Below are positions 10,537 through 61,551 of a stretch of DNA of 64,000 nucleotides, in pieces. Numbering within the stretch: position 1 is the first letter of the stretch; every line of letters begins with the position of its first letter. Source of the stretch: Amphiscolops sp. MND2022 (lineage: Eukaryota). Position numbers and translations under genes: made by a program. Below the pieces are notes generated by a model. It saw only the letters and a program-made list of their open reading frames with translations. It was not told the origin of the DNA and did not search any database. The stretch spans positions 52,018,001 through 52,082,000 of the forward strand of contig OZ076414.1 in the NCBI GenBank assembly GCA_964187785.1, read 5' to 3'.

Positions 10537-10671
10537 GTAATAAGCTTCCCCTTTTTAAAATTGCGCACTTTACTAAAATCTAGCTAACGAATATGATCTA
10601 ATAATAATTAGCCAACCCCGTCATCTCGTTTAAAGTTGTACCCTTCATTGGTTAGTGATACTTAGTTTGCT

Positions 10672-16765: not shown

Positions 16766-16804
16766 TCCCTGCAACAGCAGGAATATTATAGGTACTGGAA
16801 GATT

Positions 16805-17170
16805 TTTTTCCAGCCGAGTTTGTTCGTTAATCGAGTACGATTTAGTAGTACGATTATTCGAGTAGTTTATTCATTTCTCGAGCGATGAAGCGAGCGAGTG
16901 TTAATTATGCATTCGTTCGCTGATTCATTGAATCAGTAATCATTATTCGTTCGCCGAGAGCTTCGCCTACATTCGAATGCGAAACTTCGTCGTATGCGCT
17001 TGGTAGTTATATTTTCTTTAGTCCGAGAATTAAAGGCGGTGTAAACTGGTACAGTGATTAATTGTGCGCAATATGATGAATAAACAGGAGTGTATAGTTA
17101 TTCCATTCATGCTACTGTTATTGAACACCTACCTAAAGCAGAAAAGATACTGTGCCTCGCAAGGGCCTAT
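16805..17170 (+). mobile_element. HINE-like family 3 copy
   Basis: Shared core (GAGCTTCGCCT...TAAAGGCGGTGTAAAC) and 3' hairpin. Confidence 0.6.
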
Positions 17171-17470
17171 TTTTCGGAAATATAATTTGATCAGTGAGCA
17201 ATTGTTGAATGAGTTTTTGAAATATGGGTTAAAAGTATATTTAGCTCTTTTTGTGGATCTTTTCTGTTGTTTTCCCTCACCAATTTAATTCCTCCATTGA
17301 AGCGGTCAAGTAAAAATATTCTTTTTTAAATAGATTGTTTATTCATAGATTATTTTATTCATAGAGTATAGATAAAATTATAGAATTATAGAAAGAACCA
17401 ATTAAGTGTTGAGTAGTGTTGAACTCTAACAGCAAACTCAAATAGATTGCGTGAACGAGAGGGGATAGTT

Positions 17471-17992
17471 TTTTAGTCGGAGAAAATCCCGACTCTTACA
17501 GTGGCTAGTTTTTTTTCGTCAGTTCAACGCGAAACGTCCACTTTTTGTGCATTAATGCGCATTCACCAACTTTTACCATATGTACTTAGTACTTCATTTT
17601 CAACGCATCCAAAGCCTCTAACATGAGATAAAAAGCCATTCCAAAGCAGAAGAGTCCACTTTTTTCGACACTATGAGACTTTCCGCCTTTTTTCGGCACT
17701 GTGAGACTGATTTTTCCGAATTTTTTTTATTGTTCCTCCCATCAATTTTTGATATTTTGCAACAGAATGGATGTTCAAAAAATCCCAAAGCGTCCCCCCT
17801 TTTACATTTTTCGGCACTATGCGACTTACTGGAAACTTCAAAAAAATTTCGAAAAAAAAATCGGAGTTTTTTTTCTCAATTTTTAGTTTTTTGAGAGCTT
17901 TTGTTGTCTCCAGTTGTAGAAAAAGTGGTTTTCGATTTCGAGTCTTTTTGAGCCTTAGATATGGCGCCGACTTGGGCCGTTCCCGGCTTGTT
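17471..17992 (+). mobile_element. HINE-like family 1 copy, 153 bp upstream of the SART3 ATG
   Basis: Close relative of 58226-58748; subterminal AGTCGG/CCGACT and 3' GGGCCGTTCCCGGCTTGTT. Confidence 0.75.
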
Positions 17993-18145
17993 CGCGCTTA
18001 CTGTGGGGGGATTAGATCTCTTTTTGTTTCAGTCTGCTGTCCTATGTTGACATCCATAGTTTCAGCGGGTGTTATTTTTTACAGTAAATTAAAATGAAAA
18101 CGGTGCTTTTCATTGATTTCGCATTCAATTCTTTTCAGAGGAATA

Positions 18146-36102: not shown

Positions 36103-36255
36103 GTACGACTTCAAACCTGCTTCCCTCGACAATGACAGACCGGGAGAGGTTGAGATCCAGGGTGACAGAGAAGTGACCATCACCCTGCCCACTATTATGC
36201 CTACCCCCGCAGGCCAAGAGGAAGATGTACAGATACCTGATGATATAGTTTACAA
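36103..36255 (+). CDS. EAF1: EAF exon 2
   Basis: Acceptor TTTTCAAG|; RYDFKPASLD...EVTITLP is the EAF domain core; donor AA|GTAAG. Confidence 0.92.
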
Positions 36256-36310
36256 GTAAGTTTTATTGCCAATCTTTTTGACAAAATAAATGCATCAGAA
36301 AAGTTTGTTT

Positions 36311-36609
36311 TTAGGAGTCGGAAAAAGTTTTCGACTACTTTTGCATTCGTACCCGACCGTTCAATGAAAGTTTCAAATTTCTCAAAAATTGTCCATACGA
36401 TTTTTTTTTCAAGTTTAGCACCGTCATTCTACACCCAAAGGTACTCCTGCGTGCGCAATGGCATCAAAATCGTATGACTGAGATCTGAGAGACATATCCA
36501 AAATTAGTCCAAAAATCCTGAAGAGTAACCCGGGACAATAAAGTACCTACTTTGTTTTTTCAAATTTAAATCTGTTTCCGACTCCTTCACCACACATGCG
36601 GCTCTGGTT
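36311..36609 (+). mobile_element. HINE-like family 2 copy (most of EAF intron 2)
   Basis: 5' AGGAGTCGG; 3' CCGACTCCT followed by hairpin and CTCTGGTT. Confidence 0.7.
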
Positions 36610-40892: not shown

Positions 40893-41304
40893 GTGAGTTG
40901 ACATTTGAGGTGTGGTAGTTATTGAACAAAAGGTTGGAAGTTTGTTTTAGACTGAATCACCTCACAAACATCGTATTCTTGAATCGGAAGTTTTTCTAGT
41001 GAACTCGAAAAAAACGTGCCTGGTAAAGTTTTTGGCTGGACGTGTCGTCTTTCGAAATCATGAGGTACTTCACGTGTCCGAAACGGTTTTGGTCCTGTTT
41101 AGCGCAAACAGTTTCGTAACTTTAAGTTTTACTGGAAGTTTGGACTGAAATTTTTAACCATGTTTTATTGAAAGAAATGGGTGAAAATGGAAATTTTCAG
41201 TTGAACCAAATGCGTTCAAAAGATGATGACTGTTGTCTTTCGTGTGAAAATTGAGTGGAGGTCTTCAAATGTTGTGAGGAGCATTTATTAAACTTTGGTT
41301 TCAG

Positions 41305-41520
41305 GTTACCAATATCACGAAGAAGCCATCCATTTTCTGAGTATGTTGGGCGAGGTGTTCAACCGCAACAACCTACTTACCATCGTGCCGTTGCCTCCTC
41401 CTCTGAAAGTGGATGGCAACCCGAATGGGTTCTTTACGCCCAGTGACTACAACAAGCTCAAGTCTTCCGTTTCCTTCTTCAACGTCATGACTTACGACTT
41501 CCCCAACGGCAGGAATGCCG
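41305..41520 (+). CDS. CHID1: CHID1 exon 3
   Basis: Acceptor TTTCAG|; FNVMTYDF; donor GCCG|GTAGGT. Confidence 0.92.
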
Positions 41521-43370
41521 GTAGGTGGTATGCATATTGCATCGATACATGATGCCGATACTTTCAATCGACCTAAAGCAGAATTATTACCGCCGCGGAG
41601 AATTTTTTGCAGAGGAGTGTTAGATACCATCCGATTTTGACCTCTCTTCCATCGAAATGCCACTTAGAAATTCGATTTTTAATTTTTTTTGGAATTTTCT
41701 GGAATTCGGTCGAAGTTCTGAAAGAAAATCATGCTTGCATTCATTTGAGCGGAGCCGAGTTTCGTGTTTTGCATTTATTGCCGAGAAATGATGGTGCAAA
41801 AGTGGCAATGAATGAATAAATGTAGAGTACGAACAATTTTTAAAAGCATTTTTGAAGTTTTTTCCTTCAAGAATGAATCATTATGGCACTCAGTGGTCAC
41901 AATTTGAAGATTGAAACATCTAGCGATGGCGGCTCTCCACGAACTACTAGATAAAAACATAACAAAGCTTAAATGCTTCAACATAATCATTAGAAAATAA
42001 AACTATTGTTAAAAATTACATGAGACCTAAATGCGGAAATAACATCAGTGCAAGTAAAACATTTACAGTTTAACATAAGTACAATTAACAGAAATGCTGA
42101 AGATTTCATAAAGTTTTTTGCGATGAAAATAGACCGAAGAATCTGTCGTTCTCGGAAGCAAAAACATGATAAGATCCGTTAACATTTACGAGAAGTCGCC
42201 GACAAAATGTCATTTTGAGTGGTCCCACCTTGATTATTGGGAAATTGAAATTAGAAAGAGCACCGGATGAAATATTCATTGTTGAGACTGGGATGAGCGG
42301 CAAAAAAGCCAACTATTGAAGCAAGAAGATGCAACCGAAGCTGTCTATTAAAATTCAGTAAAGAAACAGTAATGACTGAACATAAATTATTGATATCATA
42401 ATTTATTCCAGCAATAAAGTTCAGAATTAATAATACACAAACATCATTTGTAAAATGACGTTGAAACGATGTGACTAAGTACAATTCAAAGTAATTTCAA
42501 ATGATAAAAGTCTGTAATGAGAAATGCATCAAATAAATATACCTACGAAAGTTGAAATAAAGAAGGAAAAAAGCTAGAATGGTGTAGTTATGAAGGTAAT
42601 TCATGACAGTAATGAAACTTCCATACTTTTAATTGATAGTACGTAGCTGCCAGCATAAGGATCGTAATCGGAGCAAGAAGGATGTGCTATATGAAAAAGA
42701 TTTTCCATATATAGTATATGAAATCGCTTCATATATTTGTAGTGTTCTCAAAATATCCTTGTGGATGTGCTGTATAAATTTATCGGTACAGATATGATTT
42801 GAACTATTATTTTTAAACAGAAATACTGAAAGCCGACTAATTGCTGTATCCACGTTTACACAAAGACGTTTCAAATCCTTTTTCAAAGGAAAAGACACGT
42901 TGTCAGTTTCCTTCAGAGGAATGCATAATAGTTACAATTTATCAGGCACAAAGAAACGAATCAGAAAAATAATGTTTGGAATTCCTCACTGGAAAGTAGC
43001 TACACAGAACATAGTGAAGTGATCCCAATTTGTATGTAAATTATCAACGTAAGAACTCAAGAACATTGATTCGGAACACAAATTTATATTTTGAAACCAA
43101 ATGGTTTTTTATAATGAAGCCTATTTATTTGGTCAAACACAATAGACTGTATTTGATGGCTTAACAGGATTCAGCTGGAAAAAAAACAATTTTGCACTCA
43201 ATTAATCAATAAGATCAATCTATGAAACACATGAATCGCAAAAATTGAACGTTGAGCATACACATAAGCGTAATGAAGCGTAATGACTTTCTGTTTCAGT
43301 AAAGGAAATGTATCCAGTTTCAAGCGAACTATTCAATTCCTTCAAGCATCAGCGGGAACTTGATGACATA

Positions 43371-43554
43371 CCGTAATGCATTCTGAGCGTCTGTTAAAGG
43401 GGTAACAGGAATAATAGCAGAGATATGATAGAGAAATTGCCTTTATATACACCCTCATCATCCGTAATGCATTCTGAGCGTCTGTTAAAGGGGTAACAGG
43501 AATAATAGCAGAGATATGATAGAGAAATTGCCCTTATATACACCCTCATCATCC
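43371..43554. repeat. 91-bp direct tandem duplication
   Basis: CCGTAATGCATTCTGAGCG starts at 43371 and 43462. Confidence 0.95.
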
Positions 43555-45461
43555 AGAGATGGCATAAACCATCCTATTATCCTTAAACCTTGTGTGGCAT
43601 GGATGTTGGCATCAATACAGTCAGCTGGTCCTCTATCTCGAAAGTGTCCACATTGTCGAATTACAATTGCTCCGTTCTTCTATTTGGGTGCACCAGAATT
43701 TTAGTCAAAGCAGATGTGAACTCAACGCTTCTTGCCCCGGTTACTCGATCGCTGAGTTCATCGCACGTTGTTTCAAAATTTAACCCCAGCGACGTTTACT
43801 GGCACAACGCAAGGGCAAGGTGGATTCGGTCCTTGTGCATCGCCCACTTTTCCCGTGCATACGTTGTCTTTGGACATTGCTTGAATCAACTGGAAGTTTG
43901 TTGATCGAAAGTCGAAAATTTTGTAGTTGGGGACGTTTATATCGGTAGGTGGCGCTTTGTAGATATTTACTCTTGTTTTGGGAATCACTGGATCGTTTAT
44001 ATCGAATAATGTGATTTTTATGGTTTTGAAATAGCCGACAACTTTAGGACATAAAACTCACACAGGAGTTACTGGTTTGACGTGCTGACTATACCCCAAC
44101 AGACATCTGGATTCAAGGGACAATTGAGTGAAGGATAGTAGAACATGATTGGTTCCCTCCACATCAAACAAGGAATCGATCTTAAGTGCTAACTTCCTGA
44201 TGTACTTTGAGTTTTTGGCTGGCCTGTAGTAGTTTTTTCGGATTGACTTTTGCATATAAAAAGGTACTTAAGCTTGTACCGGGATGGCAATCAAACTCAT
44301 CTTTTATGACTTTGTTGTATTTCATAGTTTGAAATCTGTCCCGCATGCAATCTTGTTCCTCTGGAAGAGATTCATCACCTTTGATATATCCAGTGGACAT
44401 TACAGATCTGTATCATTAACTAAAACATCGGAGGATTTACTGAATGGTAATATTTCTGAAATACATGAATACATAAATAATAGTCACAAACGCGCTGCAG
44501 CTATAAAAATTTAATTACACGTTCATTTAACTGTTAGGCTTGAAAATAAGTCTATCAAATAAAGAAAACTGATGAAAGTTGTAACCTTGTTGATAAAGGA
44601 GCTACGTTTATGAACTAAGGGTATAAAATTAACAATAACGACCGGAAATTGTTTTCTCTTGCTATCACATGAGGTTCTATGATAAATTCAACGGAAACGA
44701 AAACATCAAAAGAGTGTTGATCACGAACGACAACAGCGCCTTACAACAAACAAGCTCGCCCGCATTCGGGTCGCTTAGGCTCCCTCAATCCCCGAGCAAG
44801 AGATCTGTAAATTTCTACTCCATGATCGATATCAACTGAAAACAGTAATGAACAAAATATGCTCCAAATTTGTTTGCAATACTTTACAGTTTTATTATCT
44901 GGTGGAATTATGATACCCTCGATTGGTTATCCAAGTAATTGAAAAAGGATAGTGGCGATTAGATGGAACTTTACAAGTATTTGCTCTACTAGATGAAACT
45001 AGTCGCAAAACAACCGCCCTAACGTTAACTCCTTGGAACATTCATTCAATAGCCCGCAGACACCTAAATTGGAATGGGGATTGCTACAAAATCTAAATTG
45101 TATTTTTTTTCCAAAAACAGCATACCTATCGAAATTGCCGAAACTTTCAAAAATGACATAACCGTTGAAAAGTTAAAACTGGAGACCTTCTTGCCACATG
45201 GTCGTCCAGAAAGTCAACAACAAGATTAAGTTAACTTGAGAAAATGCATAGCAATTAATGGAACAGGAGTGATTTTAAAATTGAAATACTCAGGTTGCAA
45301 ATTTGAAACACCACAACGTTAAAGAATAACATTATCGAATAAACCAGATTCACAGACTGCCACAAATTCACCAATAAAATGGTCAATTCTAAAACCAACA
45401 AATTGACTGCTGAATCTCGTTCTCCAGACCTAACCACAGACTTAGCCGGTCAGTGTCAGTT

Positions 45462-45662
45462 TTAAAGTTGTAGGCGAAATGCAGCTAAAGACCATGGTTT
45501 CCCGTGAACAGGTAATGTGAAAGAGCTACCATGACCCGAATTGTGTTCTTGTAACCTCAGTAGAACACTACGTTTCGTTTGGCCGACGTAAATTGTTTTG
45601 TAGGTCTTATCGTGCAAACTCACGAGAAGGTAAACGAAACCATTAATTGTATCAGGAATTGG
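45462..45662 (-). pseudogene. GIY-YIG endonuclease domain downstream of the helicase
   Basis: Hand translation: GFVYLLVSLHDKTYKTIYVGQTKRSVLLRLQEHNSGHGSSFTLPVHGKPWSLAAF. Absent from the ORF track because it has no start codon and is frameshifted on both sides. Confidence 0.88.
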
Positions 45663-45899
45663 TACTCAAATTGAGGGTGATTCAATAGGTGCCATTGATT
45701 GAACCTTTGTTTTAGGAAAAGTTCCCATGCGTCGGAGCATTCACAGCCTGTTGTTAGGTTCTATTTCGTGCTGACTAGTAATCTGGAGGATAGTAGCAAT
45801 TGAATGACAGGTCTCACCTTTAAACAACATTCCAGTGAAAAAAGGAAAGAAATTTGTGAAGTTTCAAAAAGGCAAACCGATCCTTTAATACTGATATCA

Positions 45900-48800
45900 A
45901 AACGACAACGACGTCTAAAAGAAACTTAGTTCAATATATAATAATTCAAAAAAAATCTCAAAATTTAGTTAATAATCTTAGGAAAGAAATTGATCTTAGC
46001 GAAAACAGATAGAACCTAACGTGTTTCCTACGACTATCAACTCTCCTGCGAAATAACAAGTCTCCTACGGATTGCAAAGTTGTTACCCATGAGTTTTTGA
46101 ACAGTTAGGGTCGGATAATTTGCTACTGGAGTCTGTCATCCGAACTGATGTTTTGCGCCACTTATGAACAGAATCAGATACATTTCTCAAACGAAAAGTT
46201 CTCCAGGTTAAATAACGTTTCACTGAACAAATTGGGAATGGCGATCGAATCTATTTCGGGAGCAATGTAGAGAAGCAAACTGGAATTGTCATTACATAAA
46301 TCACCTACAATACCAATTTTTCCCTGAGAAAATTCATCGGTATTGATTCTTGATCCGACAACTGTTAAATTATTCATTAGCACATCTGGATAGCAATTGC
46401 TGTTTAAGTTGTCCTGAAGCCCGAGAGCGTCAATGGCTTCAGCAGGAAAAACTAAACGAGAAGAAAATGGAATAGCACCACGGGGTAGAAATTTCAATTA
46501 TTCCACAACCTAACGATTCAAAAGACCCTCTTCCCTCGATTGGTTGAAACAGGGCTTATTAGGTAAAACTTGGACATTAACAAAACACTTCCGCATACTA
46601 GGAGCAGAGAAAAAATCAATTTCTGTGTGGAAGCTACCCGTTGTGTAAAGTAGGTGAAGCAAAAATTTCACTTTATTTCTCGACAAACTTTGGAAAACAC
46701 AACTTCAGGTGGACAAGGTGAAATATGCCTGGTGTCTAACATAAGTTTCAGCAAATTCTTGTTCATTCGAGCATCGCAAAACGTTACTAAACCGGTCGAG
46801 TGTCGGTTGCGGAAAGTCTCGTACCATCTCTGAAGTTCAACCAAAGACGTTGGTCCTTTTCTAATAACAGCACTGCTGCCGTCAACTCAAGGCCTGTCCA
46901 AATTGTTCGTCATTTCCAGTCAAAAGTGTTGATTGGTTTTTCACTAGTTTTTTAGGTGCTTGCCTGATGAAAAACCTGGAATACAGCTCGAGTTACCGTA
47001 CAAAATACAATTGCGGAGGTTTTGATGGAAAACAAAGTTACTTCAGTGCTGAAGCGCGAGTTGGATGCATCTTCAATGTGAACTTTTTGCCGAGCATAGA
47101 AAGTTGTGTTGCGGAAAATTCAATTGCTCAGGTAAATTCAGAACGTCGTTGGAACTACCGGGAGTTTTTAGGTACCGCCGTGGCTGATTGAATTACTTGC
47201 TTTCATAGCTATGGACGAAACGTGAACAATTTCAGTGTTGGTTATTACAACTGGCAACTTTTGAAGCCATCATAAATATTCAGTCTGTGAAACCTGAAGA
47301 GCAGCAACTGGCGCAACAGGTCGGCTTTCATAGTCCTTCTTCTCTTTGCGTATTGCAGATCCGGTGGTTTTAGTACTGTGCAGTTCAGTTGTTGTGAAGC
47401 CGCCCTCAGCAGAGCCAGGTTTGATTTCAACAGTCGCATGCCCTTCCTTTCGAGCAGCATTTTTTTGATGTACTTAGAGCAGACATTTTTAGGAGTCGGA
47501 AAAAATTTTCGACTACTTATGCAATCGTGCTGTTTTTTTTGTTTTTTTTCTCCCGACCTTTTCATGAAAATTTCAAATTTCTCAAAAACTGTCCATACGA
47601 TTTTCACAAAATTTTGCACAGTCATTCTACACCCAAAGGGGCCCCTGCGTGTGCAAAGGCATCGAAATTGTATGGCCTGGATGTGAGAAACATAGCCAAA
47701 ATTTGCCCAAAAATGGCCAAAAAACAGCCGTTTTTTGACTTTTTTCGATTTTCTCAAAAACTGTCCATACGATTCGAACGAAGTTTTCTACAGTCATTCT
47801 ACACCATATTAGAGTCCTATATGTGCAATGGCATCAAAATCGTATGGCTGGGATGTGAGAAACATAGCCAAAATTAGCCCAAAAATGGCCAAAAAACAGC
47901 CATTTTTCGACTTTTTTCGATTTTCTAAAAAACTGTCCATACGATTCGAACGAACGCGAGTCAGAAGGAAAAAGACTTAAGCCGACTCCTTTACCGCATA
48001 TGCGGCTCTGGTTTATCATCAGTTGTCCGTTGCCACTTCAAAGGGTTAGTGGAAATAATTCAGGTGAATTCTGTATGATATATTCACCTGCTGACAACGG
48101 GTACTTGTATTTCTGACATCTGAGGTCATTCTGAGGTGATTAATTAGAATCCTCAGTGTAAACAATTAGATTAAGCTTCCTCAAAAAGGCTGCAGCGTCT
48201 CTGGAATTTTGTTGCGGAACTTTTTCGAATCCAAACTGTTCGGATACAGGATACAGGCGCATCTTGTTTCCAGAGGCATCATTTTTTTGACAAGAATTGC
48301 AATTGTGAGATTGAACAGATGCGCACAAATCCAAAATGTCAATTCATCCCATGTTTGTTTTCAGAGGCATCATTTTTTTCGACAAGAATTGCAATCGTGA
48401 GATTGAACAGATGCGCATAAATCGAAAATGTCAACTCATCCCATGTGTTTATAATTCGCAAAGTAGAGTGAAAGATGTCCTGAAACGCTTGGAAAAAATG
48501 CTTCTACGTGAATTTGATTTTTTTCCCATATTTTCTACATCATCGGCTAGCCAGAAACGCAAGTGGCTATGCGGGAAATTTGCAACAGAATCGTGGAACT
48601 CAGCTCTGCCCCATATTTTAATAATTTGACCGAGAATGCGTTCCGCTGAGTTCCATCAGATTGTTAACAGTTTCATGTCACACATAAAGTTGGAGAGTTG
48701 TTTTCTCCGGTACCTTTGGCTGGAAACTTGGTTTCGATTGCGCTCATGATGGCAGAATACCGAAGTGTTTTTTCATGTTTAAAGTCAGAGTAACAGATGT

Positions 48801-48935
48801 GCCTTTTCAGCAAGCTCAGCATTTTTTTTTGAGTCGCAGACATCGAACGTCAGATCTTTCGAAGAGCGTAATGGTTTTCCTTGAACTTCAATGTTACGCA
48901 CGCCGCGTTTGAAAAACTGACTTGCTGTTGACTTG
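45900..48935 (-). pseudogene. Second, tandem, internally deleted RepHel copy B
   Basis: Diverged duplicate of ~52350-48980; keeps the HUH motif AEFHDSVANFPHSHLRFWL (PHSH at 48563-48574); lacks the helicase core (equivalent of ~50460-49430); interrupted by a HINE at 47489-48013. Confidence 0.85.
47489..48013 (+). mobile_element. HINE-like family 2 copy inserted into RepHel copy B
   Basis: Same termini, hairpin CCGCATATGCGG, internal ~160-bp duplication; inserted in a T run with no TSD when compared with the empty site in copy A. Confidence 0.8.
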
Positions 48936-48959
48936 CTAATTCTAAAAATTTTGATGACT

Positions 48960-51900
48960 ATTATAGCCATATAAATCGATCTTAGCGAAATCATATAAAT
49001 ACTAACATGTCTCCGATGAAAACCAAGTTTTTCAAAGCTCTAACTCGACTAAGGATCACGTATAATTGGGACGGTAACCAAAGGCTGTATTTCTTTTCTC
49101 GAAGAGACAATTGAGTGGCAATTTTTGCAAAGGAGTCACCTATAAGTTTATGGACAGTAAGGGCCATATAGTTTGTAACGGGAATCTGTGTCCTCCGAAC
49201 TGATGTATTCCGCCACTTATGAACAAAACCAGTTACTTTTCTCAAACGTAGCGTCCTCCATTATAAATAAAGTTTATTGCTAAACAAACTGGTCATGGCG
49301 ATCGAATCTTTTTCGGGAGCAATATAAAGAACCAAACTGGAATTGTCTTTACTGGGTATTTCACCAACAATACTGATTTGTCCCTGAGATAATTCTTTGG
49401 TATTAATTGTCAATCGAACAACTGACTCAACCTGAAGGACAACACTTTGTGGTTCTCGACATTCAGAATTGAGGAATTTGATGCATCGTCATTAGCAGGA
49501 ACCCAGTTGATACTGGAATTGTGGCAAATCTCGTCATCAGCATTATTCTCACAAAATGGATCACCTGACGCTGGGATCGACAATTGATGACGATTCATGG
49601 CTTCTATCTCTGCTTCTCGCCGACCAAAAACTTTCATAATGGAAGCATCACTCAAATCATCCCAACTGTTAGCAAAAGAACAATTTTGTCGAATGATTTC
49701 AACAATTGTGGTAATGCCAGCTTGAGGTATAGGTCGTTGCGTCATAAGTTGGAGTAACCGCTGACCAATAGGGTCTAACATTCTGACTAACGTAGTTAAA
49801 AAGTGTGTGTCAAAGATGAACAACAAAATGGTGGATAAGAAAATGTCTGAACCATCGATGTTTGGCAACTGGTTGGTATCCCCGTTACCAATCACAAAAA
49901 AGCCGCCGAAAAACAGTTTATTCTGACGAAGTTTCTGTAGTATTAAATCCATTGTCGCGAGAATTTCGCTGCTAATTAAGCCAATTTCTTCAATCAGCAA
50001 AACATGTAACGACATGAGTAAAGCTTTTCTTTCTGGGTGATAATGTAATTTTTTCAAAGCTCGCTCGGTTGCTGTGCTAGGATCTGCCTTTTTGTTTGGA
50101 TTAATGCAGAAACTACGATGAATGTGATGGCAATTGAAGTGAGACGCACGACGGGAGGCTAGTCTTGTAACGTAGCATTAAAGTCCATTCAGCATTGCAT
50201 AAAGCAAACAAATGGAAGTTATATGACTTTTCCCAGAGCCAGGTTTTCCCAATAAAAGTTGACATTTCAATCATTGTGAGCATGGCGTCGATTGTTTCAG
50301 CTTGTGCATTGAAGGAAAGATCCGACTGTGAAGGAAGTTTAACTAAAGAAGGAATCCAGTGACCTGAAGTTTGTCGGATAGGCTTGTGGGATGTTCGTAA
50401 CATTCGCACGTTGCAACCTTCGGAATAGTTGTTCCTGAGTCGCAGTTAATATTGTCAACTTGCTTTTCAGTGCTGGCAGTTAAATTATTCATTAACACAT
50501 CTGGATAACAATTGCTGTTTTTGTTGTCCTGAAGCACAAGAGCGTAGATCATCTGCGTCAGATTGGTCGAAATAGGGCACATTAGGTAACACTTGGGCAT
50601 CAACAAAACAATGCCGCATACTAGATCCAGAAAACAAATCAAGTTCTGTGTCAAAGGAACCCATTGTGTAAAGTAAGTGGAGCAAAAACTTCAATCGATT
50701 TCTTTGGAAAAGACAACTTCAAGTGGATAAGGTGAAATATGGCTGGTATCTAACAAATACGTTTCCGCAAACTGTTGTTCATTTAGGCGTCGCGAAACGT
50801 AACCAAACTGATCGAGTAACGGTGAGTGTTGATTGCGGAAAGTCTCGTACCACTTCTGAAGTTCAACAAGAGACGTCAATCGTATTCTAACAACAGCACT
50901 GCTGCCGTCAACCCGAGGTCTGTGAGATTTTGTTAAAATTGTTGATTGATTATTTACTTGCTTTTTAGGTGCTTGCCTGATGAAAAACTTGAAATATAGC
51001 TCAAGTTGGCGAACAAAAAACAACTCTGGAGGTTTGATGGAAAACAAAGTTAATTTATCAATGCTGAAGTGCGAGTTGGATGCATCTTCAATGTGAACTT
51101 TTTGTCGAGCAGAGAAACAGTTGTGTTGTGGAAAATTCAATTGCTCACGTAAATTCAGAACGTCGTTGGAACTACCAGAAGTTTGTATGTATCGCCGAGG
51201 CTGATTGAAGTACTTGCCTCCACGGTATTCCAAAGCTAAGGACGGAACATGCACAAATTTAATGTTGGTTATCACAACTGGCAGCTTTTGAAGCCACCAT
51301 AGATATTCAGTTTGTGAAACCTGAAGAGCAGCAACTGGCGCAACAGGTCGGCTTTCATAGTCTTTCTTCTCTTTGCGTATTTCAGATCCGGTGGTTTTAG
51401 TACTGTGCAGTTCTGGAGTTGATACAGTGAAGCTACCATCAGCGGATCCAGGTTTGATTTCAACAGTCGCATGCTCTTCTTTCCCAGCAGCAACTTTATT
51501 GAGGTACTTAGAGCAAAAATTTTCTGTTGTCAGCTGTACATTGCCACTTGTAAGAGTCAGTGCAAACAATTCAGGAGAATACGGTATAATATGTTCACCT
51601 GCTGACGACGGGTACTGGTATTTCGGACATCTGAGGTCATTCTGAGGAGAATAATTGAAGTCATCTGTATAATAAATGAGATTAAGCCTCCTCAAAATGG
51701 CTGCAGCTTCTCGGGAACATTGTTGAGGGTTTTCTGTGAGCCAAAACTGCTCGGATAGAGGATACGGCTGACTGCGACAAATCTCGTTTCCAGAAGCATC
51801 AATTTTTTTCCGACATGAATTGCAATCGTGATATTGAACAGAAATACAGAAATCAAAAATGTCGTTCAACTCATCCAATGTGTTTATAATTCGCAATGTA

Positions 51901-54900
51901 GAATGAAAGATGTCATGAAACGCATGGAAAAATGCTTCTTCGTGGATTTAATTAGGGTTTCCAGATTCGCTACAGAATCGTGGAACCCAGCTCTGCCCCA
52001 TGTTTTAATAATATGAACGAGAATCCGCTCCGCTGAGTTCAACAAATAATCAATCAAATTGTTAACGGTTCCATGCCACATTTGGAGCATGACTGGTAAA
52101 TATAGTTGGAGAGTGGCTTTGTATTCTTCCGCAGCTTTATCTGGAAACATCCTCTCGATTGCGTTCATGATGGCTGAAATGCCATAATGTTTTTTCATGT
52201 TCAATGTCAGAGTAACAAAGAGGTGTGGTTTTTCAGTCTTCATGGCCTGCCCAACCTCAGCAATATTTTTTTCTGAGTCGCAGAGATCGAACTTAAGCTT
52301 TTCCTTGAACTTCAATGTTATGGACGCCACGTTTGAAAAAATGACTAGTTGTTGTATTATGAAGACTTAAATTTAGGAGGATGTCCGATAGGAAAAACAA
52401 ATAATTGCGATTGGATGAAACATGCAATTCCAGGTGACGGGATAAAGCGTGCTCATGGAAGCCTTGAAACCCGAATAAGTGTGTTTCTCGGTTGTTGCCG
52501 AACAAAAAATACGACAAAGCGCCTGTGAAGGAACCATCAGAAGCTTGATGATAAAAATTACTTGGTGACAGCAAAGCTTCCGCTTGTAATAAAGAAACAG
52601 TTTCTCCGGGAATGGAAGCAGCAAAATTTTGGAACAAACGTACTTTTTCGAGAAGGAGAGAGGATTCTGAGGTCTTTTAAATGTACTCAGCACACCATTT
52701 AGTAACAAATGTATAGGCGCGACTGTTGGATCTTGGTGCTCCTCTAACAGGTAGAGTATTTGAGGCTTCAGTTTCGGCAGCGGGTTCGAAATGCAGACCC
52801 GATTCTAGAATACCAACGAACGAAACAGATGAGTCATCCTCGTCATTGGAAAAAAATGAATTAGTACTTTCGTTGTCAGAATGGGTGATTTCTTCGGGCG
52901 GCAAATTTTCAACCACAGAGGACGATCCAGACGGTAGTGGATCAATAAATTGTTCATCGTGCAATTGTGAAAGTATTTTGAAATGTCGTTTACAAAGGGA
53001 AGAAGAACAACGATCTACTGGACAACGCCATGCTGCTTTCCCGGTGCATCTTTCAACACGGCAGATAAATGAAGAAGTTGTTACGTTTACAGACAGACGT
53101 ATCAAATGTTTTGCACATTTAAAAACGTTTTGGCCTCCAAAAACTGCAGTGAGTGGTCTCTGCCAACAAAAGTTGTGTCACTGACGTATAAAAGAACGTT
53201 CCAATTTCGATTGAAATTATTAATAACTTTACTGTCGCGTCTTTCCGGCAATCAAACGAAGGAAAGGATATGTGCCACCAACCTGTGAAAGCACCACCGT
53301 ATCGAAAAGCCAAATTACACAATTGATTTTCAGGCACAGCCACCAGAGAATAAGTATAGGTATGGACTGTAATCGATGAAGGAATTTCACTTCGCCTGCT
53401 AGCATCCTCTGTACAAACAATGGCAATTAAGATGGAGGGTGAAGGCTCCAGTGATGGAAACAAGTCACAAATATCAAACTGAAGCATTTGACGAACCGGC
53501 ACGTGCAGAGCTAAGCAAGATTCTGTTCTTCACAAACTTGAGTTACTATTGTCGCCAAATTTTGACCGATTAAGTTATCAATTGCAAATAACGACTGCAT
53601 TTCATTCAAGGCGACATCAATCACCGGTGATTTGAAATTACCACGGGTTGATTGCATGCGTGTCAATCTGTTCAAACTTGTATTGAATTTTTGGCTATTG
53701 ATGTTCTGAAGAATCAAATGACTGAAATATTCAACGTTGCTGAGAAGAAAAATTATGTAAGTAACCCCGAAACTTCTTCCTGAAACAATCTACATACATC
53801 CTCTGGAATTGAACCATGAACAGAATTATGATGGAGAAGTGCAAGAGACGCAGGAATGGACTCCTTGTGACTATAGTTATTGTCCAAAAATTGCTTGATT
53901 GATGCGAATGAGAAAAATGTCAAATTGGAACCAGTCGAGAGATGTTGATCGAAGACATCGCCTGCTATTGGCAAATTCATGGTGACAATGGACTCAACGA
54001 AAGACTCATTGACCTCATTGCTGTTCTGGAGCCGCGTGAATATGTTACGCACATCCTGTCGGTTCTGAGAGAAAAAAAGTTTCCGAGTTAGGCAACAAAT
54101 TCTGACTTTTAATATTGAACTGTCTAACGCTGGTGATCTGCAAAGTGCTGATACCTTCGTAACCTTCTTTACTAACTGCCATGGTGTAGGTGTGTGAAAA
54201 ATTCCCAACTCTCAATGTGGTGGCATTTCGAGCTTTCGTTGTCACTAAAGCTAAGCGATCACATTGAGGATGCAACAGGTTTCCCAATGGTGATGTGGGA
54301 ACGTGACACATTTTTAAAACAGTTCCTTGTGAGCTGAACAAGTCTCAAGAAATAATCCGTTGGAATTTACCTCGACATGAGGCCCGGCAACAAAAGATTG
54401 CAAATGAATACAGGTTTGGAGGAAATCGTTGCGCATTGCAGTAAGCTTTTTAGAAGATGCTTTGAACGAACGGAAATTGTTAAACCATTTGTTCAACAAA
54501 TGAACAAAAGAAACATGGGAACAGTTCATCAACAAGGTGTAACAACCTGCGGGACTTTTCACGACAGGGAAAGCGTAATCATTCACCTTGTACTTCAAAT
54601 TATGAGCAGTGTGATTGGATAGCAGATTAATTCTTGAACTTGATGGTGAAATCTTGAAACAATGTGGGTCCACTTGGATTTACGTAACCGAGCTGCGAAG
54701 CTACCATGGACCACGATTCATGAAATTCCTCGGGCAACAACGAATAGAAATACTGGCCATTGCATTGATACTCGCCAGAAGGAACAGTGAAACTGCAGAG
54801 TACAGCCGGCCAAGCAAATTTCCATATGCTTTCTCTCAAGTAACACTCACATAAATTACAAACATCTATTGATAGATGTTGTCTAAAGAAACATGGGCTT

Positions 54901-55268
54901 ATCTTGTTACCAAATTGACGCTTGCAGTACAGAGGACCGAGTGATATTGTTCTCAAATTCAGTGGATAAGATGCAGTGCTTTGGCGCAAACATACCGAAC
55001 AAAGCCCTTGAGAAGTAACAGATGGAAACACTCTAGGTTGAACATGTGAGAATAATTCATCGTCAGCAAATCGAAATTTGACACAGTAAGTACATTGGTT
55101 GGAATTATCAAACACTTGATTCACAACAGAAGGTTGGCTCACACTCTCAGTTTCTTCAACATCGATGAAGCCACCAACATCTATGGTTTCATTGAAAGTA
55201 TCCTGCGAAATGACAGGCTGAGAGGGCGAACCTTCGACAACGAAACAATCTTGATTCTCATTGTTCAA
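48960..55268 (-). pseudogene. Helitron/Helentron-like RepHel polyprotein gene, copy A (frameshifted)
   Basis: Successive minus-strand fragments: Cys-rich N-terminus; Rep motif I PHLFVTLTLN (~52200-52230); IIPYSP and SKYLNK; Walker A GKPGSGKS (50226-50249); LLIEEIG; FGG...GDTNQLP; RTQIPV...TVHKLIG...QLYVILSRV. Confidence 0.9.
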
Positions 55269-56471
55269 TCGATTGACACTTGGAAATCTGCCCGTTTGTG
55301 CATTACGCCTTAATTGTCTTCCTGCTTACAAGCTGTCGAAACATAAATCCACATAACAATGCATAAACTAAACTGAATAGTACACCTCAGCCTAAATCCA
55401 AAGCCATTTTTTCCGGTAATGAATTGTTTTGAAAGCCAAGTTCATTAGGTAAATCCTGCAGCTTTAATAATACAAAAGACTGCTGACAAATCCGATAACA
55501 AATAGCAAGTAAAACGGTAAAAAGAACGACTTCATGGGGATGCAATAACAAGATTGCTATGACGGAACTACAAGATAAAAATAGCTGGAAAGAATGGTAA
55601 TGATAACACGATCTGTGAACATTGAGCTGCCCTGAAAAAAATACGCTGTTAGGTATTTACCATTAACGAAAATCTCACTATCAACAATATTAAAGTGTTC
55701 GACAAAACACTAAGTGGAACGAAAAGGTAAACAATGGAGAACCCATTTAATGACAGTGTTGTAACAAGTAAAGCTTCTGAAAAAGGATTATCCGAATCTA
55801 TGCCACTAGCATTACCGAAGAAGTTATTGCAAAAATTTAAGGTGAGTCAGAAGAAAAACACCGAATAATCATTTAGAAACCTAATTACGCAAAAAAAGCG
55901 GGAACCAAAAATTTAGAATTGATTTATTTTAGAAAATTTGTTAGAATCCTATTTGGAACCAACAATCAACAATTAAAATAGATATAAAAACAATTTTTTT
56001 ATCTGATTCACAGTATAGACTGGGAAAAAACCACGAACGTTGCGCTAAAGACTAACACTTCCCTTATTGAAGCTACACTGAATCTATAACAAAAAGTGGA
56101 AAAACTATGTTCTCGAAAAAAATTAATTTCATGATAAAATACTGAAATTGATGATGACTAAAACTTTGATGAACAATGCATCACAATAATCAAGCTAACA
56201 AACAATTGGTCACAACAGTGTATCAAGTTCAAACGAGCTAATACAATCCTGAAAATAAACTTCATGGTTAAATGTTCAATCATTGATGATGACAAAAAAA
56301 GCTAATAAACAATTCATCAAAATAAACAAGCTAATAAACAATTAATCAAAACAATGCTTCAAGATCCAATGAGCTAATACAATCCAAATCAGTAGGAGTC
56401 ATCATTAAAAAATGAAAACAGTAAAATAGGTAATAAAATTGACCAAAACAATGCTTGTCTATTGTATTTCG

Positions 56472-56780
56472 TTATGATTGAAAAATCAGTATTTTTTTCA
56501 ATATCTTGGCTTGAACAAGAACCTGAAAGTTGAAAACGGCGTTTTGCGTGAGATGAACACCGTCGTACATTAATATAGTTGCTGAATTCAGTTTGGAGCT
56601 ATCATCGTGGAATATATATTGGAATCGTGCGGCTCCGTCTCTCAACAATCCATTCATCTCCTGTATCAACTGATGTAGGTCATGCACTTGTGCATCGAAT
56701 CGGCGCACAATGCCAACGACATGGACTACTTGAACTTTAGACTGCAACAATGCAACGAGATCCAAAATGTGCTGGAAAAC
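56472..56780 (-). CDS. SGNH hydrolase-like gene exon 2; joined protein 175 aa
   Basis: Acceptor ACATTTCAG|, in frame; VVGIVRR...MYDGVHLT (block V DxxH). Confidence 0.8.
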   Translation of the reverse strand, partial: VFQHILDLVALLQSKVQVVHVVGIVRRFDAQVHDLHQLIQEMNGLLRDGAARFQYIFHDDSSKLNSATILMYDGVHLTQNAVFNFQVLVQAKILKKILIFQS

Positions 56781-56820
56781 CTGAAATGTTAACAGTATTT
56801 AAATGATGTTATTTGTATGA

Positions 56821-57369
56821 TTATAAAAAAACTCATGATGGGTTGACACAATGTGCCACCTAGAGCTCGAAGAAACAGTCAGGTAGAGAACCACAAATTA
56901 GAAACTTTACTTAGTCTAAATTATCAAATTCAATACATAAACATCCTAATTGGAGACACCTATAATGGTTTGAGGTATAATACCCCACCTAAGGTGTAAA
57001 TGTTATAAAAAAACTCATGATGGGTTGACGCAATGTGCCACCTAGAGCTCGAAGAAACAGTCAGGTAGAGAACCACAAATTAAAAACTTTACTTAGTCTA
57101 AATTATCAAATTCAATACATAAACATCCTAATTGGAGACACCTATAATGGTTTGAGGTATAATACCCCACCTAAGGTGTAAATGTTATAAAAAAAACTCA
57201 TGATGGGTTGACGCAATGTGCCACCAAGAGCTCGAAGAAACAGTCAGGTAGAGAACCACAAATTAAAAACTTTACTTAGTCTAAATTATCAAATTCAATA
57301 CATAAACATCCTAATTGGAGACACCTATCATGGGTTGAGGTAAAATTCCCCACCTAAGGTGTAAATGTT
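56821..57369. repeat. Tandem repeat, 3 x ~182 bp, inside the SGNH gene intron
   Basis: TTATAAAAAAACTCATGATGGG starts at 56821, 57003 and 57185; copies nearly identical. Confidence 0.95.
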
Positions 57370-57496
57370 CAGACGTACCCAACAATGCACTTTAAACATT
57401 TCAAAAATATCAACGACGATTTCCTAGTTAAAATTTTAATACGTAAGACAACTAATTTTACTGTTTAGTTTACACAAATAACTATAAATGTATAAC

Positions 57497-57715
57497 CATG
57501 GCTGGAGAGTGAGCAGGTTGATTTTTCCACTGTTTTAAGGCATTTCCTCCAAGGAACAGAATGACCTGCTGATTGTCACCAACTCTCATGTTTCTTATAA
57601 AACGGTGTACACGCTCGGCATTGGGACGCGCTCCACTAAAAGAGTGAACATCTGTTTGAGGCAAGGAAACAGTTTTTGCCATGGAATCACTGATCAACAC
57701 AAATTTGGACGGCAT
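57497..57715 (-). CDS. SGNH/GDSL hydrolase-like gene exon 1, nested antisense in CHID1 intron 3
   Basis: MPSKFVLISDSM (block I), SFSGA (block II), VILFLGGN (block III); phase-0 donor ATG|GTTATA (weak). Confidence 0.75.
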
Positions 57716-58225
57716 TGCTCTCTGAAAAATAAAAAATGACAGTGCCTCATTCACAATTTTAACTGGAAGAACTCAAAAAAAATGTGAAAAAAATTGGAAA
57801 CTTGAACTACTTGAGAGCATTTCTCTGAACGGAAAATAATAGAATCGGAGCCGATTTTTGCGATTTGGTTTATTTTAGATACGTACTTGATAGCAAATAG
57901 CACTATGTCATTCCTCTGGTGGGGTTCCACTTTTCCGCGACGAATTAGTTTTTTGAATCAAAATCTGTCAGTTCGAGTAGTCACTTTTTTCTACGAAAGC
58001 AGAACCGGCTAGAAGGCCTCACTTCTACAGTCTTTTGTTTTCTCGAAGACAGACACCAAACCTATAAATTGGCCTTTAAATTGGCCCAGTTATAGAGTTC
58101 CGTTAAAGTCCAAATCCCCTGGTGAATTCGGGAATTATCTGAATATATTCGGCTTCCTGGAACTTTTTTGTCACTCGACTTAATGAATTTGATGTACTTA
58201 CAGAGAAATGTTATTTTATCCCACT

Positions 58226-58748
58226 TTTTAGTCGGCGTTTTCGAACAAAAATCCCGACTCTTACAGTGGCTAGTTTTTTTTCGTCAGTTCAACGCGTAAG
58301 TCCACTTTTTGTGCATTAATGCACATTTACCAACTTTTACCATATGTACTTAGTACTTCATTTTCAACGCATCCAAAGCCTCTAACATGAGATAAAAAGC
58401 CATTCCAAAGCAGAAGGGTCCACTTTTTTTCGGTACTATGAGACTTTCCTCCTTTTTTCCGCACTGTGAGACTGATTTTTTTCCGATTTTTTTTATTGTT
58501 CCTCTCATCAATTTTTGATATTTTGCAACAGAATGGATGTTCAAAAAATCCCAAAGCGTCCTCCTTTTACGTTTTTCGGCACTATGCGACTTACCGGAAA
58601 CTTCAAAAAAAATCCGAAAAAAACGATTTTTTTTCTCAATTTTTAGTTTTTTGAGAGCTTTTGTTTGTTGTCTCCAGTGGTAGAAAAAGTGGTTCTCGTC
58701 TTTTTGAGCCTTAGATATGGCGCCGACTTGGGCCGTTCCCGGCTTGTT
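58226..58748 (+). mobile_element. HINE-like family 1 copy
   Basis: Colinear with 17471-17992 and has the same termini. Confidence 0.75.
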
Positions 58749-58933
58749 TGTAAATGTTTAGTCAGCTTGATTATTGTGTCATTTTGCTATATTATACTAC
58801 TTTGACGCTTCATGGGAAAAACTGATAATTTCTGGCTAACGTCGGTTTTTTCTGCCGTACTCCGTCGCTGTTGAGTGTCGCTTTCTCTGCAGTCCTACGG
58901 CTGTTTGCAGTGTGTCCTATGTTCTGTTTCCAG

Positions 58934-59307
58934 GTCCGGTGGCTCCTGCCAGCTGGGTCGCAGGCTGCATGCTCTACTACACAAAGGATCTGCCCGCAGA
59001 GGAACAGAAAAAGTTTCTGATGGGTCTCAACTTCTATGGGTACCAGTATAAACCCCAGTCTAGCCAGCCCGAACCCATAGTGGCAAGCGTGTACTTGGAC
59101 TTACTCAGAAAGCACTCAAAAAGTGCCAACTTTGAATGGGAGAGCAATGCGGCCGAACATATTCTGGAATTACCTGGGAGCCATATCATATTCTATCCCA
59201 CCTTGCATTCCATAAAACTTAGACTGCAATTAGCAGAAAGACTCAATGTTGGAGTGGGTATTTGGGATTTGGGTCAAGGCTTGGAGTATTTCTTCAATCT
59301 ATTTTGA
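58934..59307 (+). CDS. CHID1: CHID1 exon 4; joined CDS 394 aa; preceding intron is 17,413 bp
   Basis: Acceptor TTTCCAG|; GPVAPASWV...LMGLNFYG...FYPTLHSIKLRL...GVGIWDLGQGLEYFFNLF (cf. human GQGLDYFYDLL). Confidence 0.95.
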
Positions 59308-59498
59308 CCCTGTGTCATTTGCCACTGCCGTTGTCAGAAGTCACTGACGGTGCTGAAAAATATTGAGAGTGGATAGACATGGATGCTTTATTGAAAACTA
59401 TTGTGTACATTTTTATCAGTATTCACTCAGTAAAGTTCATTTATTAATATTTCTGCTTTAGCAGGAATATTATTGTAACCTCAAACTTTCTACTTTTT

Positions 59499-59986
59499 TT
59501 TCAGTACAAATTTTTCGGACGATCTGAATAATTCAGATATTTTGTTCGGCAGTGAGTGTAAGCGTGGGAAAGCTGCCGACAACAATTCAATTCTAGTGCG
59601 ATGGAACGAGCGAGTTGGTAATTATCCATTCGTATGCTGACGTCATTGAGATGAAGCGAGCGAATGTTCGGAATTGTGCTTTCGTTGCCCCCGAGTTATT
59701 GAGATGAAGCGAATGAGTGTTAATTATTCGTTCGTTGAGAGCTTCGCCTGCATTCAAATGCGAATGCGAAACTTCGTCTACGCTTAGTAGTTATATTTTC
59801 TTTGGTCCGAGAAGAATTAAAGGCGGTGTAAACTTTTACAGTGATTACATGTAATTGTACGCTAAATAATAATTGAACAAGAGTGTATTGGTATTCCAGA
59901 TATGATTCTTTTATTAATGATTTTTTTTTGTTTCAAAAAAAATAAAGATTAAAGCAGAAATAGTACTGAGCCCCGGAGGGGCCTAT
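59499..59986 (+). mobile_element. HINE-like family 3 copy
   Basis: Subterminal TCAGTAC / GTACTGA, then perfect hairpin GCCCC-GGA-GGGGC. Confidence 0.65.
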
Positions 59987-61551
59987 TTTAAAATGTGGTT
60001 TTGTCAATTTTAAAGTTCCAACCTGTTCATCGTGTATCTGTTGCAGTATCTCAATAATGACTTTAAGTTTGAGTTTGATAACGACGTCTGAGCTCATTCG
60101 TTCTGATTTGATTTTGTTTTTTATCGAACAATAAACGAATATTGGACCTCACGTTTTTTTTCTCCTGAAAACCTTTTCCATTTGTACTCTGGGGATCCAA
60201 ATAAAATGAGAGTCCCCTTACTGAAGTTTCAATACACATGGGCAGTTTTTTGCGAAAATAGCTTCGAAATACACGAAGAAGGATGACGAATTCGTCAACG
60301 AGAAGCCAGTTCTGCGTAAATTAAATCTCGCTCATCTCACATACACTCCTGTTTACCATATACCTAATTCAAGTTTTTATCAATCTCTGAACTAGTTTTT
60401 TGTTTTTTTTTTAAAAAAAAATCTCTGAATTCAAACATCCCCTTAAGAAAGACCCCTCTTAAATCTCTCAAGACACGAAAATGACCGCTCTTACTTGTAC
60501 GACCCCCCTTTTATTTGTACCCCAGATTAACTTCATTTTTTGCAACCAGCGTCAAACAACAGCGACTCTGACATTGTAAAATTTACTGCACTCAACTATA
60601 ATCAACTTGGGAATTTGCCTTATCAACTAAATCCTCTTCCGATTAAATCGCTTTGTTTTCTCATTGTATTGCCCTTGAATAATTCAATAATTGAATAACT
60701 TTAGCGTATTTATTCCGTCCTTGACAAAATTTGTTCGAAGGGGCTGATGTGTAACAACTTTTCCTCTAGAAGATTCTATTGGCTGAGCCGAGGGCGTTTT
60801 GCAGACTTAACTGTGGTCCAATGGACTTCATAGAAACTGAGTTTTTGATCTTTTTATAGCAAATGACGGAACTAAGAACTATCACGCCCATTGGGATGTT
60901 GCCCAAAATCGTTTATTGCTAATGTTTCAACGTTTTGTGGGTCATTTGTTTGACCTCCTATCTTGTGATGTTATGAAAGCGCACTGACTTTCTCAGCGGG
61001 TTGCGATGGTTGGCTGCTTATACGGAGGAGGGTCAACACTTTTGTAACACTTGGGCGCTTTTGCGAATTTTGTTCCATGCTCTTGGGGAGAATAATATTG
61101 CAGTAGTGACGTTTCTACTGATGCTGATGATGATTGAAGTTTTATGATAAAGTTAATACAAACAATTCATCTGATTTCATTTGAAATATTGAACTCTTTA
61201 TCATGAATTAAATGAACATATCCTGAAAATAGATTTATCTCTTCTTAATCTTCAGTTCTTGGTTGTCATTGATTCCAGTTGAAGGACTGACCTCTTTGCC
61301 AACAACCTTTCAATTGATCCTCGATTTTGTTTTGCAGGTTTTCATTTCTCAGTCGAATCTCACTCTTGAGCAGTTGCTTCTCATCGAGGCGGCAAAGAAA
61401 ACAACAGAAGTTCCTACGGACAGTTGCAGGTTAGATTTTTTCTGAAGTAGAAACAACCTAGAAACAATGTTCCGTTTTTGGTTATGCGCTTTCAGCGAAG
61501 CCACTCTTAAAAAGCAAAATGGTCCTTACAGCATTCAATAAAGGACTTTTC

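Follow-up and report, generated by a model that had tools for sequence, protein, structure and literature searches.

To our knowledge, the current classification of Helitron-like elements (HLE) recognizes two groups, HLE1 and HLE2, and the apurinic/apyrimidinic (AP) endonuclease is the only nuclease recognized as being borne by their transposases. HLE1 elements (5' TC...hairpin-CTRR 3', inserted between A and T) have no nuclease after the helicase; HLE2 elements, which end in short terminal inverted repeats and insert between T and T, include the Helentrons, with an AP endonuclease (Exo_endo_phos) at that position. Neither group duplicates its target site. RPA-like genes are established Helitron accessories and lie upstream in HLE2, of which DUF6570 is a marker according to the HELIANO study; this study lists 20 domains captured by Helitron-like elements, and GIY-YIG appears once, in the HLE2 family HelenSM92 of the moss Sphagnum magellanicum (PMC11417382). 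SGNH genes named texim, related to PAF-AH and CR1 esterases, were described by Tomaszkiewicz et al. in 2014 just 5' of teleost Helitrons and on the same strand, an association not found in amphioxus, sea urchin, or Oikopleura (PMC4021074). Here we describe a 64,000-nucleotide (nt) stretch of Amphiscolops sp. MND2022 DNA (contig OZ076414.1, positions 52,018,001 to 52,082,000 of the forward strand), hereafter called the window. It very probably holds a dead copy of a multigene Helitron-like (rolling-circle) transposon, internally rearranged, probably 5' truncated, and lying antisense in an intron of the host gene CHID1.

The relic spans ~16 kb of the minus strand, from ~58.1 kb down to 41.9 kb. 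In transcription order, it consists of an SGNH-like gene, two copies (B and then A) of the Rep-PIF1 transposase (RepHel), a GIY-YIG remnant, an RPA-like gene, and a 3' block, and it is colinear with intact public elements over all modules. The mapped features are as follows.

57497..57715, minus strand: SGNH-like exon 1, with its ATG at 57715, block I (SDS), block II (SGAR), and block III (GGN)
56781..57496, minus strand: SGNH intron, GT...AG, phase 0, with a 3 x 182-bp tandem repeat at 56821-57367
56478..56780, minus strand: SGNH-like exon 2, with block V (DGVHL); stop codon at 56475-56477
49006..55319, minus strand: RepHel copy B, decayed, with shifts of frame and in-frame stops; residues 5-2178 of the relative P0152 match it by tblastn, and it is made up of a Cys-rich N terminus of ~1,000 aa (55319 to ~52700), Rep (~52700-51200), a linker, and PIF1 (~50280-49006)
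46073..48957, minus strand: RepHel copy A, partial, from Rep residue ~988 to the helicase end, with ~1 kb of the helicase core missing
45301..45815, minus strand: GIY-YIG (SLX1-type) exon remnant, core at 45477-45665, contiguous with copy A
43368..44406, minus strand: decayed RPA-like gene (tandem OB folds), similar by tblastx/tblastn to a 334-aa open reading frame (ORF) of L004 and to L001, L002, and L006
41920..41975, minus strand: conserved 3'-terminal block, ending ...GCCGCCATCGCTAG, with its G at 41920

Exons on the plus strand match human CHID1 (PDB 3bxw) on both sides of the relic, at 41292-41549 (residues 205-270; E 3.9e-5) and at 58840-59304 (residues 267-392; E 2.4e-30), and the element is therefore antisense within that intron. 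Earlier CHID1 exons lie at ~39.7-40.9 kb, also on the plus strand, and reading these pieces by eye makes the host intron the third. A preliminary description of this DNA had likewise placed the element on the minus strand of CHID1 intron 3, with SGNH, Cys-rich, Rep, PIF1, and GIY-YIG modules between 44749 and 57760. All of these modules were recovered on the minus strand and inside that span, but the element continues past 44749 to 41920, and the RPA-like gene had been absent from the earlier account.

To identify the family, we scanned 1.84 billion representative proteins with HMMER, using as query the longest open piece of the window (418 aa, 50694-51947). This gave 330 matches, and many of the proteins are 2,100 to 2,800 aa long, the match falling at residues ~1,100-1,700. 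Helitron_like_N was above its Pfam cut-off in three relatives (P0004, P0011, and P0022), Pfam PIF1 reached 34 to 57 bits in relatives, and the helicase matched solved PIF1 helicases in the PDB with an E value of 5e-13. An alignment of Rep from 23 relatives and the window pieces displayed motif I (FvTlTCN..HPG), the HUH motif (EFQ..GNlPHyHiLlW), a Cys finger (C..C..CR.P.YP), and a two-tyrosine motif (YLxKY). The sole PDB match of the Rep profile was the bat Helitron transposase Helraiser (7lcc), a weak match (E 0.021) that nevertheless aligned exactly at the catalytic motifs. Given these catalytic motifs, together with the Helraiser and PIF1 matches, the family is a true, if distant, member of the Helitron-like elements.

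Among the intact relatives are L004 (14.3 kb, 5756-20073) and L006 (15.1 kb, 5452-20522), and in both, the genes follow one another in the order SGNH, RepHel, GIY-YIG, and RPA-like, all inside defined ends. Proteins of the sub-lineage closest to the window share 53 to 76% identity with those of the window. Some relatives of the family harbor an OTU domain (PF02338) in the N terminus.

We then compared the transposase of the window with that of P0152, an intact relative of 2,178 aa. Copy B is the counterpart, a Rep-PIF1 frame of ~2,170 codons (55319-49006) that is now in ~15 open pieces, and the ~1000-codon Cys-rich stretch reported earlier corresponds to its N terminus, colinear with P0152. 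In the alignment with relatives, copy B reads LFVTLTLN at motif I and has lost the HUH motif by deletion, and its Y2 motif, KYLNKV, has Val in place of the second catalytic Tyr. The Walker A motif GKPGSGKS is in frame and readable; Pfam PIF1 gave 24.4 bits on the piece at 49413-50177, under the cut-off of 25.9, and PIF1 clusters of a language-model atlas score 0.97 for the helicase piece, so the earlier report of PIF1 motifs holds. Pfam scans of 20 stop-free window pieces returned GIY-YIG and sub-threshold PIF1 only, with no Rep, SGNH, or zinc-finger model.

Copy A is more decayed than copy B. A tblastn search with P0152 covers its residues 988-1676 and 2023-2138, and it retains the HUH motif as FPHSHL (48452-48655). 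The HUH Rep motifs described earlier can thus be seen in the window, but solely through alignment with relatives, and the HUH motif itself in copy A and not in copy B. Overall, nothing is left of the window transposase that can work. Copy A also contains a 2 x 172-bp tandem repeat (47571-47914) whose translated pieces (...NFSKTVHTIFTKF...) resemble window positions 36244-36485; probably, another short dispersed repeat has inserted here.

The relation between the two copies allows for more than one history. By blastn they are 68 to 91% identical (mean, 77%), with repeat offsets of 3.05 to 4.1 kb. The 3' limit of copy B is the donor of the intron between helicase and GIY-YIG, and the joint with copy A lies ~65 nt inside this intron. 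They could therefore be remnants of two elements, one 3' truncated (SGNH to helicase end) and the other 5' truncated (Rep to 3' end), joined by recombination or nested insertion. The position of the joint, the GIY-YIG spacing, which is as expected from copy A, and an identity of only ~77%, as diverged as the other paralogue in this genome (85 to 89%), would fit such an event. However, a single old duplication followed by decay would give the same picture, and both copies run in the same direction and in register, without any terminal sequence to separate them. We hold the joining of two elements to be a serious contender, at somewhat less than an even chance, and refer below to one internally rearranged copy.

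A GIY-YIG domain after the helicase had been reported from the window, and Pfam PF01541 indeed scored 27.5 bits at 45465-45665, above the cut-off of 22.6. The remnant is 76% identical to L004 over 63 aa and ends before the catalytic Glu region. The same model reached 30 to 39 bits in L004, P0011, and P0022, in the last two of which the domain is at the C terminus of the protein. When a profile of the family domain was compared with the PDB, SLX1 (4xlg) was the best match (E 2.3e-8), and two other SLX1 entries, 7wme and 6seh, were also at the top. SLX1 is a structure-specific nuclease that normally depends on SLX4.

To count the domain among relatives, a hidden Markov model (HMM) was built from eight family segments and run on all fetched relatives; in 128 of those with 1,500 aa or more, the ORF extends to the helicase C terminus. 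GIY-YIG was present in the same ORF, 26 to 66 residues past the helicase, in 110 of these 128, and 14 of the 18 others stop 0 to 10 residues past the helicase end. At that stop position L004 has a phase-2 intron of ~165 nt (GTAAGT...AG), splicing of which restores the frame into the GIY-YIG exon, and the domain was directly downstream in every such locus fetched (L001, L002/3/7, L004, and L006). Since the stops coincide with the L004 intron and GIY-YIG follows just downstream, the stop-terminated models most likely arose as artefacts when genes were called in prokaryote style. The preliminary description had considered that other RepHel copies might never carry the nuclease; these counts speak for linkage, and GIY-YIG is part of the transposase clade-wide and not an independent insertion.

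An SLX1-type GIY-YIG at a fixed C-terminal position is found in a large set of public proteins, among them RefSeq models from a tunicate and an amphipod, a GenBank protein from Perkinsus, and many metagenome ORFs; most bear the annotation "uncharacterized" or "ATP-dependent DNA helicase." Among the named carriers are Styela clava LOC120345964, Perkinsus olseni FOZ62_022488, JGI entries labelled "predicted GIY-YIG superfamily endonuclease," and, by the family HMM, Hyalella azteca LOC125177549. The clade is thus present in animal, alveolate, and metagenomic data. In L002, a partial second copy of the RPA-like N terminus and of GIY-YIG (32 to 33% identity) lies between the GIY-YIG and RPA-like genes, at 17490-18400, an old internal duplication.

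We next turned to the SGNH gene, which had been described as spliced. Its two exons are joined by a phase-0 GT..AG intron, and this intron is inflated in the window by the 3 x 182-bp repeat, its L004 counterpart measuring only ~430 nt. Exon 1 is 51 to 55% identical to L004 and L006, and the blocks SDS, SGAR, GGN, and DGVHL are invariant in all three copies despite 34 to 55% overall identity. Database support is weaker. For exon 1, Lipase_GDSL_2 was the sole Pfam family match, below threshold and in one of the three copies (E 0.02), and in the language-model atlas the exon falls near GDSL-lipase clusters (0.91). Two of three weak PDB profile matches of exon 2 were GDSL/acylhydrolases aligned at the C-terminal block (E 1.4, not significant); overall, a profile search of the PDB with the SGNH exons returned nothing significant, and a word-indexed protein search with exon 2 found itself and one relative only.

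In all three copies (window, L004, and L006), the exons share the strand of RepHel and lie ~1.1 to 1.9 kb upstream of its start; in L004 and L006, they are within the mapped ends. The gene also occurs in L009, where positions 2400-11600 form a tandem array of ~2.5-kb units, each with both SGNH exons (70 to 80% identical to L004) and a PIF1 fragment (residues ~1759-1934); these units look like a deletion derivative that retained the esterase. The possibility, raised earlier, that other RepHel copies never carry SGNH was therefore likewise decided in favor of linkage. Profile HMMs run over all six frames did not find SGNH in L001, L002/3/7/8, or L005, so the gene is cargo of one sub-lineage, that closest to the window.

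Whether this cargo serves the element is a separate question. It may be a passenger, a host esterase captured once by the ancestor of the sub-lineage and without a role in transposition. Helitrons are known gene capturers (PMC6431247), the SGNH gene stands apart and has an intron of its own, it is missing from the sister lineages even by profile HMMs, and passenger status is also one option proposed for fish texim. However, the four catalytic blocks have been conserved among copies of such low identity, and the gene has been kept in L009 derivatives that lost nearly everything else, which suggests selection within the element. We regard the passenger explanation as quite possible, although it falls slightly short of being the better bet.

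The linkage in relatives also bears on whether the modules belong together at all. SGNH esterases occur in LINE (long interspersed nuclear element) ORF1s (PMC4021074) and GIY-YIG nucleases in Penelope-like elements (PMC6431247), and the window is repeat-rich; an ordinary Helitron could thus have come to lie beside an SGNH fragment, for instance from a CR1/L2 LINE ORF1, and a GIY-YIG fragment, for instance from a Penelope-like element. This we consider very improbable. L004 and L006 have the same order, strand, and spacing at merely 34 to 76% protein identity, and they are unlikely to be orthologous to the CHID1 intron because their noncoding flanks are without similarity to the window. Moreover, the nuclease is of the SLX1 type and in frame with the transposase in most relatives, and no reverse transcriptase is nearby. 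Penelope-like elements and CR1/L2 LINEs are analogues only, being reverse-transcribing elements with unrelated core enzymes. The modules are thus best read as parts of one multigene element.

Its last gene is RPA-like. The intact L004 homologue (334 aa) follows GIY-YIG, and the gene occupies the same position in L001, L002, and L006; in the window its 3' part is duplicated as a 2 x 91-bp repeat (43371-43552). The RPA-like ORF had zero Pfam matches. In the atlas, it fell among the OB-fold single-strand binders POT1, MEIOB, CDC24, and Ssb-like proteins (0.90 to 0.92). An AlphaFold2 model based on 17 homologues reached a predicted local distance difference test (pLDDT) score of 70.9, compared with 40.8 with 5 sequences, and its top Foldseek matches in the PDB were RPA, RPA70 DBD-A/B, Teb1, POT1, and CST (E 3.8e-5; prob 0.99). 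The C...C...C.C columns in the second half of the alignment are invariant. The model thus points to an RPA70-like protein with tandem OB folds. In the more distant L005, RepHel and GIY-YIG form one ORF of 2,777 aa, and the RPA-like gene lies upstream of the transposase (L005:6562-7554).

We then looked at the ends of the elements, whose definitions derive from copies in another genome. A block of ~45 nt ending CATCGCTAG is the only noncoding similarity common to L004, L006, and the window, and in all three it lies ~1.5 kb past the RPA-like gene. CATCGCTAG occurs once in the window, and in related loci CTAG abuts the 5' end of the next unit; position 41920 is likely the 3' end of the element. 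At the other end, L004 and L006 share a 5' start, GTGCGCCGGGG..., ~1.77 kb before the SGNH ATG. CTAG precedes this start motif (CTAG|GTGCG) at 16 of 17 distinct sites in nine loci, and these sites are head-to-tail junctions of full-length and ~1.3- to 2-kb noncoding units in long arrays, as is typical of rolling-circle elements. In L006, which provides the one clean junction pair, no duplication of the target is seen.

The 5' end also contains a hairpin, ~40 nt in. Its loop, GGGTAGGGYCC, is conserved, and its stems come in nine versions, all perfectly complementary and averaging 5.7 bp versus 3.5 bp in shuffles. The hairpin is preceded by a G-run/C-run mini-hairpin in L001-L008 (e.g., L004:5756-5831, L006:5452-5526, and L002:21235-21308). 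DNA folding revealed no conserved or strong hairpin at the 3' ends. For L002, L003, L007, and L008, a 5' boundary was not obtained, as contigs start inside the element or flanks are duplicated too. The L002 contig (ctg177350_370x_c; 49.5 kb) is labelled circular, has 370x depth, ~3 to 4 times that of other contigs, and holds one intact element; either a collapsed tandem array or an extrachromosomal circle might account for it.

In contigs of public runs from the same organism as the window, depth was single-copy over 55.0-58.15 kb. Run X1 contains a second contig set, 85 to 89% alike, spanning the RepHel N terminus, the spacer, and both SGNH exons, which indicates that this genome holds at least one paralogous SGNH-RepHel unit. 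The open SGNH frame in the window would also fit a domesticated host gene cluster instead of a transposon. This seems to us exceedingly improbable, as the RepHel, GIY-YIG, and RPA-like frames are full of stops and frameshifts and the family is multicopy, with terminal motifs and head-to-tail arrays. We thus retain the reading of a dead transposon copy.

In its intact form, such an element would encode three gene products: a two-exon SGNH-type esterase; a transposase of ~2,350 aa with a Cys-rich N terminus, an HUH-Y2 Rep, PIF1, and an SLX1-type GIY-YIG added via the short phase-2 intron; and an RPA-like single-strand-binding protein. By analogy with the Helraiser model of Helitron transposition, Rep would nick one strand at the element ends and hold it covalently via tyrosine, PIF1 would unwind 5' to 3', and the RPA-like protein would coat and protect the displaced single strand. 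GIY-YIG, at the position of the Helentron AP endonuclease, would most likely cleave either the target or an intermediate with a branch or flap, giving second-strand or flap cleavage. SGNH may be a lineage-specific passenger or have an esterase function, as proposed for LINE ORF1 and texim.

Several observations weigh against this interpretation of the locus. Helitron_like_N had zero Pfam matches among the window pieces. The window lacks GGGTAGGGYCC, the loop motif at the 5' ends of the relatives, and the 5' boundary of its copy lies somewhere between 57716 and 58151; since, in addition, there are only ~440 bp between the SGNH start and an unrelated, ultra-abundant repeat and CHID1 exon, the copy is probably 5' truncated. 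The ends of the family are unlike those of textbook Helitrons, starting with 5' GTG... and not with TC as in HLE1, and the target dinucleotide is taken from the one clean junction in L006. The SGNH assignment comes from motifs and weak database matches. Its open frame of 175 codons is not evidence of selection or function in a dead element, because RepHel decay, at ~1 break per 150 codons, would let about one-third of genes of this length escape. Finally, the transposition roles proposed for GIY-YIG, the RPA-like protein, and SGNH are drawn from analogy.

How does this lineage compare with those already described? It resembles Helentrons in having HUH-Y2 Rep and PIF1 in one giant protein with a long Cys-rich N terminus, a nuclease directly C-terminal to the helicase, an RPA-like accessory gene, OTU in some relatives, and tandem or satellite-like arrays at the ends. 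However, an SLX1-type GIY-YIG takes the position of the AP endonuclease: Exo_endo_phos had no match in the precomputed Pfam families of 120 relatives or in our own scans, and DUF6570 was neither among those precomputed families nor in P0003, P0004, P0011, and P0022. Unlike in HLE2, the RPA-like gene is mostly downstream, and the ends read 5' GTGCG...CTAG 3'. With HLE1 and Helraiser (7lcc), the lineage shares alignable catalytic Rep motifs, PIF1, and the CTAG 3' end, but the relation is very remote, and the 5' TC and a clear 3' hairpin are both missing. It is therefore not a canonical Helitron, being remote from Helraiser and different in its 5' end, nor is it a strict Helentron, as it has neither AP endonuclease nor DUF6570.

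With respect to precedent, GIY-YIG and SGNH had both been regarded as nonstandard Helitron cargo. Their combination is indeed undescribed, but each has one precedent (PMC11417382 and PMC4021074). HelenSM92, compared here by description only, is a single family-level capture in a moss, whereas the domain is ancestral to the present clade. Texim matches in arrangement only, with SGNH 5' of RepHel and on the same strand; platyfish teximY has 15 exons compared with 2 here, and no GIY-YIG is mentioned (PMC4021074). A literature search for Helitron, Helentron, or RepHel with GIY-YIG or SLX1 gave nothing relevant beyond HelenSM92, and we found no paper describing the clade, the SLX1 type of its nuclease, or the four-gene combination. 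The earlier suggestion of a distinct rolling-circle lineage with another nuclease and an esterase is thus supported by the linkage in relatives and by an architecture not found in the literature.

A bolder proposal, which we put forward tentatively and think rather more likely to fail than to hold, is that RepHel-GIY-YIG elements are a third, eukaryote-wide major Helitron-like branch beside HLE1 and HLE2. An SLX1-type nuclease would be obligatory in its transposase and would provide a second protein-encoded cut, one sub-branch would have added a functional SGNH, and its elements would start with GTGCG plus a covarying hairpin at the 5' end and finish with CTAG at the 3' end.

Beyond the relic, an ultra-high-copy dispersed repeat is present as two pieces (58152-58939 and 59334-60121) that bracket the last CHID1 exon, with a summed contig depth of 1e5 to 1e6 versus ~80 for single-copy DNA. 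Many contigs join 58749 to 59444, so the 694 bp bearing the exon interrupt an otherwise contiguous repeat, relatives of which occur in the window at 17483-17992, 9251-9632, and 16884-17122. The mini-hairpin GCGAAGC showed no enrichment in the window (9 sites versus 4 expected; 3 of 100 shuffles had as many).

The window copy itself is an inert relic, and its sole evident effect is a longer CHID1 intron. Recognizing the group to which it belongs would improve transposon annotation and account for stray "SLX1-like" and "PIF1-like" gene models, and work on it can start from L004 and L006, which are intact and have defined ends. It would also allow the question of why certain rolling-circle transposons require an additional nuclease to be put to a natural test. 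With the SGNH linkage, the puzzle posed by fish texim reaches a second, differently built Helitron lineage, one that keeps an esterase with intact catalytic blocks. If the third branch is real, these elements would transpose with the help of a second, protein-encoded cut, made in the target or in a branched intermediate, a step that canonical Helitrons lack.

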